Notes: generated by a model from the letters alone, not told the origin. 64,000 nucleotides of DNA from Adineta vaga (GCA_021613535.1 CP075495.1:6386001-6450000); one strand, 5' to 3'; shown: positions 2,639 through 33,413, counted from the stretch's first letter. Translations and numbers: made by a program.

Positions 2639-3434
2639 ATTTCATTTATTTTTGTTTTGATTTTATAAAATATACATATACATTTATATATAAATCTATC
2701 TATCTTTTTTTTTCTCTTTGTTTCATATCGAATTTTTTTCTTGTTTTGTTTTTTTGTAATATATTGAAATATTTTTCAGTTCGTTTTCTTTTCTGAATCG
2801 TAATATATATAGAAATTAGTTTTGAAAAATTTGAACTTTCTTTTCTTTTTAACTAAAACAATTTCGTCATACAATTATTATATGACTAGTTATACTTCAT
2901 TAAAAAGTTAATATTATTACAGATGTCAACAATGAAAAACCATCTGTTTAATACCTTTTGGCAAAAGAACACATAAATCAATAAATAAATATACAAAAAA
3001 TAATTGAGATTACGAATACCATACATAGTTGAACTATCAACAAGAATATTTCGTCTTTGTGTTGAAAATATTTCATGGTTTACATATCGAATCTATTTCT
3101 ATCACCTAGTTTAAAGTAGAATTTATTTCTTAAGTCTTATGTTTTTTCATATCTAAATAAAATATTGATTTATCTTGTATGATTAATGAAATTACAATGA
3201 AAAGCATATTTTTCTCTCATCTATTTTGTTTTATTAAAGAAAAATATTGACACGAGTAAATATCTATGTTCAGTCTGAAATGATAATAATAAAATCTCTG
3301 TTTTTCTCTGTCAATTGTGAAAGTTTATCTTGTTTCCTAGTAGATATTGACAAAGAGAGAAAAAAAAATAAAATGTCAAAATACTCAGAACTTGTTTTTT
3401 TCTACTTAATGTGTTTCTCTTTCTAAGCTAACCC

Positions 3435-25580: not shown

Positions 25581-25644
25581 GAAACTATGAATTCTTTATA
25601 ATGTACTCTGATCGAAATAGAATTAGAAAATTTTCTTTTGAACA

Positions 25645-25810
25645 TTGCAAGATCAACTGATTTTGTTAAAATACATTATAGTTCAGTTTCATAAATAAAA
25701 TTATCATCAAAAAATAGAATAAAACTTCAAAATGAAAATATATTCCGAATACAATTTTTTCTCATTCAATTCGAGACTTTCAAATTGATTCATCATCAGT
25801 CATTCATTTC
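25645..25810 (-). promoter_or_regulatory. Candidate SECIS element(s) in the 3' UTR of the deiodinase-like gene
   Basis: Minus strand: ATGA-aactgaactat-AA-tgtattttaacaaaatcagtt-GA (25692-25653; aactga/tcagtt stem) and ATGA-tgaatcaatttg-AAA-gtctcgaattgaatga-GA (25796-25760; tcaatttg/cgaattga stem). Confidence 0.55.
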
Positions 25811-25819
25811 TAAGTTATT

Positions 25820-26776
25820 CTATTCATTTGATCTACCTAATGTTTTCAAATGTTCAATAAATTCTCGTAATTCTAGCATGGTTTCACTTGGTTGTGCTTT
25901 ATAAATCAATTGATGTTCTTCATCAATAATATATATTCGTACAGGCCATGGTGCATATAATTTTTCGAATAAATTCCCATCTGTTTTATCCATTACAACA
26001 GACATTTCAATATTAAAATCACGAATGAAATCTTTGGTAACTGTTAAACGTTCTTCAATTGTTCGAGTTTGATTGTATTTAACTGGCACACATGTTGGAC
26101 TCCATCGTGCACTACAAATCGGCCATTCATCCTGCGCATGTGCTTCGAGAATATAGACAAAACGAAAATTAATTGATTTACAATAGACTTTGTACAAATC
26201 AGACAATTGAGACATGATGGCTCGTAATGGCGGTCATGAATATGAACCACTGATCAATACAGTTGGTGAAGAAGATTTCAATCCATCAAATAATTGACCT
26301 TCTTGTCCATCGAGTTGAATAATTGGAACATCAGGTGCAACATCACCAACTTGTAAATCACCATCTCTTGCTCGATTATATTTTGTATAAAGTGGAATAT
26401 CTTTTAAATCGGGATAGATTTGTGTTGCACATCTCAAACATAATATTGCATTGTCCATTTCATCGTCAAGATGAAATTCTCGTACAACTTGTTCTTGTAA
26501 TTCATTCACTACATTTAACCACGATGAAGACGAACTTTGTTCAGCTTCACTAAATCGTTTTTGGTATTCATCCGATAGACGTAATTCATTTTCTCGAATT
26601 AACATACGTTTAAGTAAACTTTTTGGAATAAATGATTGTGAACTTTGAATGATCTATTTATTAGAGTATTACAAAATAATCAATGATGATATGTATATAA
26701 GTAAGCTTACATTTGATTTGATCAAATCATCATAAGTAAAATTCGTTCGACCACTGGTTACATGTGCCATACCCAT
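25820..26776 (-). CDS. Iodothyronine deiodinase-like (DI-like) thioredoxin-fold selenoprotein, ~299 aa; Sec encoded by TGA at 26234-26236
   Basis: Exon 1 26776-26711, exon 2 26653-25820. The two track ORFs are in frame, separated by TGA+PPLRAI. Motifs GDVAPD, GSYS-U-PP, FVYILEAHAQDEW, EERL, VMD, YAPWPVRIYII parallel the deiodinase motifs GSCT-U-PPF, YIEEAHxxDGW and YGALPERLY. Confidence 0.88.
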
Positions 26777-27530
26777 TTTGACAAAGTTACTTTTTTTTTG
26801 TTTCTCATCGACTTTTATAGTGAGTACTAGTTGCTTACGTGTGCTGCAATAACATGAATCATTACTGGTTGTAGACGTGACAAAAAGTATCTAAAGAATT
26901 ATGTACCTATATTGTTCTCTGACATTCGTTAGTGAATATCGAATCAAATCACTTATTGTTATCTTTAAAAAAGTTTTTCATACAGATACTTCAATCATAC
27001 GATATGAACTTTTGTTTAGCGATGTAACAATTTTCTCGTTCTCTTCCATTCAAATGAGTTCGTGATATTCATCAATGTTTATATCAAATAAAGACCTTGT
27101 TCAAGAAATTATAATCGATGTGTAAAAGATCATAATCAATATATTTTCCTTGATTGAATATTGAATAAATTTCAAACAACTTTCTCTAACTGAAACATAA
27201 TTAATTGAAATTTTATTTATTTTTCTATTGTATCAAATCAAAGTTCATCTTGAATACGCTCACAAGACAAGACAAACGATATACGAACAATTCTATTTAC
27301 TTCTTCATTCTAAACAATAGACATGTGGCGTTATCTATGATGATCTAAACCTATGAAAAAGAAGGTCAATGAGAAAAGATGTCACTGAAAATTTTCTTTT
27401 TTTTTTCGGGAAGTCATTCATCAATAGAGCAGAATTGTGTTTTTCCATTCGATATATCTTGATAGAGATATTGATAATTGATTGTTTATATTTACATCTC
27501 TCTCGTAGGTTAATGTAAAAGAAAACGAAT

Positions 27531-33413
<5,883 letters not shown>

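Follow-up and report, generated by a model that had tools for sequence, protein, structure and literature searches.

Results

Gene structure and public annotation

The stretch of Adineta vaga DNA analysed here, 64,000 nt in length (GCA_021613535.1, CP075495.1:6386001-6450000; hereafter the window), carries on its minus strand a gene with two exons and 299 codons, in which codon 162 is UGA (Table 1). From the ATG at 26605 the frame reads ...PTVLISGSYS and then meets the TGA at 26236-26234, its sole in-frame interruption, beyond which it continues with CCG CCA TTA CGA GCC ATC ATG..., translated as PPLRAIMSQLSDLYKVYCKSINFRFVYILEAHAQDEWP..., and encounters no further stop before the TAG at 25822-25820. 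The arrangement is far beyond chance. Upstream, the ATG at 26776 starts a first exon of 22 codons, which closes at a GTAAGC donor. A first-pass annotation of the window had described two open reading frames, 26234-26605 and 25820-26215, as lying in one frame and being split only by the TGA, and had estimated a product of about 299 residues. Frame, coordinates and motif proved correct, and the ATG at 26776 together with the 57-nt intron yields 299 codons. The strongly conserved start MGMAHVTSGR suggested N-myristoylation at Gly2; residue 6 is Val and not Ser or Thr, and we make no such claim.

Table 1. Features of the Adineta vaga gene and its SECIS element. Positions are counted from the first nucleotide of the window.
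Feature	Position	Strand	Support or remark
5'UTR, minimum extent	26777..26843	-	transcript contigs extend to 26830 (X1) and 26843 (X4)
Exon 1, coding, 22 codons, MGMAHVTSGRTNFTYDDLIKSN	26711..26776	-	N-terminus also in GenBank entry P0208 and in orthologues L032 and L028
Intron, 57 nt, GT..AG	26654..26710	-	skipped in X1, X3 and X4 contigs; CT..AC on the plus strand
Exon 2, coding, 278 codons including Sec codon and TAG	25820..26653	-	covered by contigs without a joint
In-frame TGA, predicted Sec codon 162, GSYS-U-PPLR	26234..26236	-	no variant in four runs; column kept in relatives
PF00837 thioredoxin-fold catalytic domain	25853..26356	-	genome match C2:6411853-6412356
N-terminal, mostly helical domain (together with exon 1) that matches no Pfam family and lacks a transmembrane segment	26357..26653	-	
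3'UTR, minimum extent, holds the SECIS	25631..25819	-	contig ends at 25699 (X1) and 25631 (X3)
Type II SECIS	25729..25810	-	fold, structural scan, weak Rfam SECIS_5 match, conservation
SECIS helix I	25810-25803 / 25736-25729	-	outer helix
SECIS AUGA	25796-25793	-	23 nt past the stop codon, 440 nt downstream of the UGA
SECIS helix II, 11 bp, one bulged U	25792-25782 / 25757-25746	-	
SECIS unpaired AAA (within GAAAG)	25780-25778	-	12 nt from AUGA
SECIS mini-stem, 5 bp	25776-25760	-	
SECIS GA	25745-25744	-	

In GenBank the gene appears as 'hypothetical protein I4U23_007776 [Adineta vaga]' (P0208), an entry of 161 residues which ends at ...ISGSYS; standard annotation truncates the gene, as had been expected. 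This entry is identical to residues 1-161 of our model and hence verifies exon 1 and the intron from a separate source. Entries from Rotaria sordida, R. magnacalcarata and Didymodactylos carnosus stop at the same GSYS, and in the models of Adineta steineri and Rotaria sp. Silwood2 the region around the TGA is instead treated as spliced out. Since the bdelloid orthologue entries are cut or mis-spliced alike, the gene is old within the Bdelloidea and has been systematically mis-annotated.

About 750 bp upstream of the gene start, in divergent orientation, the window contains a JmjN-domain exon (27531-27692, plus strand). The same neighbour is found on metagenome scaffold L032 (827-1159), and this synteny is therefore shared with a related bdelloid.

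Transcripts carry the UGA and the SECIS element

Contigs from three sequencing runs belonging to two studies (X1, X3 and X4) have the 57-nt intron precisely removed. The label of these runs as RNA is a guess, and we regard the contigs as transcripts because the GT..AG intron has been excised from them. Single spliced contigs cover 26830-25699 and 26768-25631, which places the UGA and the SECIS element on one mature transcript, and the contigs give the 3'UTR a length of at least 189 nt. A fourth run, which carries a different organism label, covers 25979-26617. At 26234-26236 the contigs of all four runs show no joint, insertion, deletion or variant. The spliced contigs from three runs cross the TGA unbroken, as the first-pass annotation had predicted for an unspliced codon; therefore, the UGA belongs to the mature mRNA, being neither removed by splicing nor an artefact of assembly.

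A deiodinase-type catalytic core without membrane anchor

The C-terminal piece of 137 residues past the TGA matches PF00837 (T4_deiodinase) with 43.5 bits at a gathering cut-off of 27. In a six-frame search of the genome, the match runs across the TGA and reaches 67.6 bits over profile positions 73-234 of 237, with one TGA inside. The ORF of 123 residues that precedes the TGA includes the opening strands of the thioredoxin-type domain and matched no Pfam family. Among solved structures the best sequence match is mouse Dio3 (4TR3), and this alignment begins exactly at the Pro-Pro after Sec170, where PPL past the TGA aligns with the PPF that directly follows Sec170 in Dio3. PMC11592359 lists the residues that make up the hydrogen-bond network and the substrate site of deiodinases, and from these we checked a core set comprising Dio3 Ser167, Thr169, Tyr197, Glu200, His202 and His219 as well as Trp207, six of which are kept, with Ser in place of Thr169: Ser159, Ser161, Tyr189, Glu192, His194 and Trp199 of the A. 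vaga protein correspond to Dio3 Ser167, Thr169, Tyr197, Glu200, His202 and Trp207. The seventh, His219, is replaced by Thr in NQTRT in the pairwise alignment. Moreover, Arg275, the thyronine carboxylate clamp of Dio3, is replaced by Pro (YQGGRGP versus YKAQPSE, in an alignment extended by eye), and the resolving Cys239 by Met (pairwise alignment, by eye). No conserved Cys was found in the alignment of orthologues, and the 299-residue protein has no transmembrane anchor, its maximum Kyte-Doolittle mean over 19 residues being 0.64.

The N-terminal domain is conserved in bdelloid orthologues as well as in more distant homologues. For the fold we modelled a full-length homologue rather than the window protein itself, namely P0053, which has the same MGM... 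start and GSYS-x-PPLR motif, the x here being a W that stands in for Sec. With a pLDDT of 80, the model comprises a beta-hairpin, a helical region at residues 26-113 and a thioredoxin fold. It superimposes on mouse Dio3 (4TR3) with an E-value of 4e-12, a TM-score by target of 0.79 and an rmsd of 1.7 A, and matches mouse Dio2 (9H48) with an E-value of 2e-11; the next fold class, ResA/Prx (peroxiredoxins), follows at 5e-7. Its best match in the ESM Atlas, with a TM-score of 0.80 over residues 10-280, belongs to a cluster of ubiquitin-like plus deiodinase-domain proteins which come mostly from Mucoromycota. This superposition indicates that the helical N-terminal domain joined to a DIO core is a shared eukaryotic architecture.

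Judged by sequence and modelled fold, the gene belongs to the deiodinase family and encodes a predicted Sec enzyme with the catalytic core of the family. Thyronine deiodination by the encoded protein appears doubtful, because a membrane anchor is missing and Dio3 His219, Arg275 and Cys239 are not kept.

A type II SECIS element in the 3'UTR

Shortly after the stop codon, the 3'UTR forms a stem-loop which has AUGA, then after 11-12 nt an unpaired AA, and finally GA, the three features by which we recognized a SECIS element. Our own structural scan, a simple and loose one, recorded seven SECIS-like sites in 128 kb, that is, on both strands of the 64-kb window, including the SECIS of the gene. The other sites, at 3179-3240 on the plus strand and at 63664-63582, 61873-61779, 48994-48904, 4451-4388 and 809-724 on the minus strand, were taken as background. 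With the same scan, eight of the nine A. vaga paralogues described below gave a site 23-93 nt past the stop codon; in the ninth, L017, a SECIS with two U-U mismatches was recognized by eye. Sites were also detected at all five homologue loci with enough 3'UTR (L028, L029, L031, L032 and L033), and none was recorded at L030, where only 69 nt of 3'UTR are available. Compared with the background density, the enrichment of SECIS sites past stop codons has a chance probability of about 1e-17.

The offset of the element from the stop codon is conserved in the orthologues L032 and L028. In the closest orthologue the offset is equal, and helix II is identical except for its closing pair, which is U-G in the window gene and U-A in the orthologue. 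Between groups, the helix II sequences are wholly different yet paired, with compensatory changes in eight of nine predicted pairs, as counted in an alignment of eight SECIS sequences. A MAFFT alignment of all 13 SECIS sequences was discarded, as its 3' strands were mis-registered; the eight-sequence subset was usable. Among strain variants, the only one in the SECIS region lies at window position 25729 (A>G on the plus strand, in X1 and X3) and changes the closing G-U pair of helix I to G-C; all remaining variants in the 3'UTR lie outside the SECIS. Furthermore, in orthologues L028 (1831-1833) and L032 (2894-2896) the true stop codon is also TGA, located 26 and 23 nt before the SECIS, and each of these mRNAs would carry one recoded and one terminating UGA.

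With Rfam, SECIS_5 matched the element at 19.4 bits against a gathering threshold of 50, SECIS_1 did not match, and nothing in the whole window reached gathering; at eight paralogue loci Rfam gave no matches. A covariance model (R1) built from five paralogue SECIS sequences with flanks retrieved neither the window SECIS nor those of the other groups, and it was dropped as a test because the flank sequence dominated the model. We read these misses as poor fit of the models to AT-rich SECIS elements and not as absence of the element.

Conservation of the TGA in orthologues and paralogues

A search of 1.8 billion representative sequences with the C-terminal piece returned 792 relatives. Among the best 150 of these, most are 110-140 residues long and start just past the Sec column, as would be expected from a gene caller meeting a stop there. 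For two such 131-residue matches, P0001 and P0166, reading the DNA upstream revealed the same TGA; one of the scaffolds concerned is L032. At all seven orthologue or homologue loci that were read as DNA (L027-L033; 56-80% protein identity), a TGA occupies the same column and is the only in-frame stop, except in L027, where the frame breaks near the 3' end. Bacteria-like homologues have Cys at this column (GSYT-C-PPFR; P0080, P0129 and P0041), and one homologue has Ser. Together with the TGA in the DNA of the homologues, this agrees with the Sec/Cys column that the first-pass annotation had anticipated. A 'W' in the Sec column was considered as evidence against Sec and rejected, since the underlying DNA is TGA in P0003, P0006, P0007 and P0053 (L027 and L029-L031). 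The W in metagenome and Logan predictions results from a genetic code that reads TGA as Trp, and it may mislead comparisons of Sec and Trp. P0027 and P0086 also show W, and a recoded TGA is assumed there by analogy, the DNA having been read for four of the six W entries.

A search of the A. vaga genome yielded nine PF00837 loci, all of which carry G-S-x-x-TGA-P-P. They comprise one canonical gene (L011, GSCT-U-PPF, 121.9 bits), two near-identical copies, a group of five, and the window gene on its own. The two near-identical copies, both deiodinase-like (DI-like), are found at C3:4161551-4162048 (plus strand) and C3:4181773-4182267 (minus strand); separated by about 20 kb and oppositely oriented, this pair looks like a recent inverted duplication.

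A newly arisen nonsense mutation or a wrong base would also appear as a lone in-frame stop, and the TGA might accordingly mark a recent pseudogene or a mistake of sequencing or assembly. We consider this almost vanishingly improbable and refuted by the conservation: the TGA is identical in the contigs of four runs, one of them under another organism label, it recurs at seven independent orthologue or homologue loci and in the nine paralogues, and the gene has no other disruption and is transcribed and spliced.

For pairs of orthologues, dN/dS ranges from 0.09 to 0.28 upstream of the TGA and from 0.17 to 0.28 downstream. In the unsaturated pair (dS 0.46 and 0.47) the values are 0.23 upstream and 0.28 downstream. 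The first-pass annotation had expected ratios below 1 on both sides, and both lie below 0.3; therefore, both halves are constrained as coding sequence. These values also bear on the view that the annotated 161-residue protein ending at the UGA is the only real product, with the downstream frame as an untranslated relic. UGA is normally a stop codon, and GenBank as well as several Rotaria annotations end at ...GSYS. Nevertheless, this view is very unlikely to be right, as the 137 downstream codons are under purifying selection and hold the conserved half of the PF00837 domain, a 161-residue product would break off in the middle of the thioredoxin fold, and a conserved SECIS follows, in an arrangement which recurs in nine of nine paralogues.

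In Rotaria magnacalcarata, the orthologue of L012/L014 exists in two near-identical copies, one with TGA (Sec) and one with TGG (Trp) at the catalytic column. The TGG is located at L037:1874-1876 (also in L038, L039 and L026) and the TGA at L034:1459-1461 (also in L035 and L036). The TGG is not an error, because one assembly contains both copies and four assemblies contain the TGG form; it is a rare Sec-to-Trp replacement. A genuine TGG at the Sec column was found only in this one Rotaria copy, which belongs to a paralogue other than the window gene. Directly upstream of the same DI-like paralogue, Rotaria has a ubiquitin-like gene (PF00240/PF11976; L034:1-954 and L037:732-1353). P0007 and P0005 are fusions of ubiquitin-like and DI-like parts, the same fusion occurs in the Mucoromycota cluster of the ESM Atlas, and what is annotated in Rotaria as two genes may be a single fusion.

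Selenocysteine machinery in the genome

The first-pass annotation had named tRNA-Sec, SEPSECS, EEFSEC and SBP2 as components to be expected in this genome; all four were found, together with PSTK and SelD. The tRNA-Sec scores 66.7 bits and is called SeC with anticodon TCA by ARAGORN, SepSecS reaches 300 bits, SelD/SPS is represented by two loci, and PSTK corresponds to an ORF for which archaeal PSTK proteins are the sole relatives of solved structure. The top matches to TIGR00475 were rejected as eEFSec, since they are mitochondrial EF-Tu, eEF1A, HBS1 and LepA; the fifth candidate is eEFSec, with human eEFSec as its best solved relative (E-value of 1e-26 versus 1e-4 for EF-Tu). Another ORF matches human SBP2 with an E-value of 4e-47. 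Apart from the deiodinase family, a GPx homologue at C6:10299115-10299459 (plus strand; full-length match to PF00255) contains one in-frame TGA and is probably another selenoprotein.

Decoding of UGA162 by a near-cognate tRNA for Trp, Cys or Arg instead of as Sec is extremely unlikely. Although the TGG in the R. magnacalcarata paralogue copy indicates that Trp is tolerated in at least one duplicate, a SECIS with conserved AUGA, AA and GA lies behind each of the nine genes, the genome has the full Sec machinery, the column is Sec in the DIO enzymes and Cys in bacteria-like homologues, and the 'W' of the databases is TGA under another genetic code.

Discussion

Our analysis indicates that the locus is very probably an intact, transcribed selenoprotein gene of A. 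vaga, with UGA162 as predicted Sec codon, a type II SECIS in the 3'UTR and a product of 299 residues. From the established eukaryotic mechanism, SBP2 would bind the SECIS and recruit eEFSec with Sec-tRNA(Sec), and the ribosome would insert selenocysteine at UGA162 rather than terminate. The product is predicted to be soluble; a helical domain at its N-terminus precedes a thioredoxin fold of the deiodinase type, in which Sec162, within G-S-Y-S-U-P-P, would lie at the start of helix alpha1. The selenolate may then attack an electrophilic substrate, either at a carbon-halogen bond or at a peroxide or disulfide, and the resulting Se-X intermediate would be reduced by external thiols. The substrate is probably not a thyronine bound in the manner of Dio3.

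A. vaga has no thyroid, unlike the vertebrates that bear DIO enzymes. The vertebrate enzymes DIO1-3 share with its gene the PF00837 domain, a UGA-encoded Sec at the same G-S-x-x-U-P-P column and a SECIS in the 3'UTR, and the Ser, Thr/Ser, Tyr, Glu, His and Trp of their catalytic core are common to the A. vaga protein (PMC11592359). However, the identity is only about 25-28%, Dio3 His219, Arg275 and Cys239 are not conserved, and in place of the N-terminal transmembrane anchor of DIO1-3 the A. vaga protein has a helical domain of about 115 residues. Sec-containing DI genes, partly clustered, have been reported from Trichoplax (11), Capitella (12), Lottia (4) and amphioxus (9) (PMC3473315, Jiang et al. 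2012). Like the nine loci of A. vaga, these are multi-copy genes in thyroid-less animals; that survey did not include rotifers, and the A. vaga gene falls into a divergent subgroup, marked by an N-terminal domain of its own, and not into the GSCT-U-PPF type. In the literature searched, we found no paper on rotifer selenoproteins.

Beyond animals, the DI-like selenoprotein reported from Dictyostelium has a SECIS of type II (PMC2375036, Lobanov et al. 2007), and a further paper describes 'DI-like' selenoproteins for invertebrates and protists as well as for bacteria and early fungi (bioRxiv 10.1101/314781). The protist and fungal proteins resemble the A. vaga gene as Sec-containing deiodinase homologues outside thyroid hormone signalling, with a type II SECIS that has an unpaired AAA, but belong to other lineages. 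DI-like selenoproteins are already established in thyroid-less organisms among other invertebrates, protists and fungi, and the A. vaga gene adds one. The ubiquitin-like plus deiodinase proteins (the mostly Mucoromycota cluster of the ESM Atlas, P0007, P0005 and the paralogues L012/L014) share the helical N-terminal domain, aligning over its 'RENELRLS...' part, as well as the DIO core; proteins of the P0007/P0005 type have an additional N-terminal ubiquitin-like domain, whereas the A. vaga gene starts with MGMAHVTSGR and lacks one. Bacterial deiodinase-like or AhpC-TSA-like proteins (P0080 and P0129; Sargasso Sea survey, PMC1088965) share the core GSYT-C-PPFR ... YIxEAH..D.W ... WP.R, but have Cys for Sec in the examples read and signal or membrane N-termini, and they lack the helical N-terminal domain.

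Overall, our analysis corrects an annotation error, as I4U23_007776 lacks the catalytic residue and 137 further residues, and provides a set of AT-rich SECIS elements which the Rfam models missed. It also shows that bdelloid rotifers have the full set of selenocysteine components and nine or more deiodinase-family genes with a predicted Sec. It is conceivable, though on balance we think it unlikely, that the gene represents a distinct, uncharacterized class of soluble DI-like selenoenzymes common to bdelloids, early-diverging fungi and microbial eukaryotes, characterized by the helical N-terminal domain, a core without Dio3 His219 and Arg275, and ubiquitin-like fusions in sister genes, and acting on a substrate other than a thyronine, for instance a disulfide, a peroxide or a different halogenated compound. 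If such a class is real, the expansion in bdelloids, where eight of the nine DI loci are non-canonical, could relate to their tolerance of oxidative stress and desiccation.
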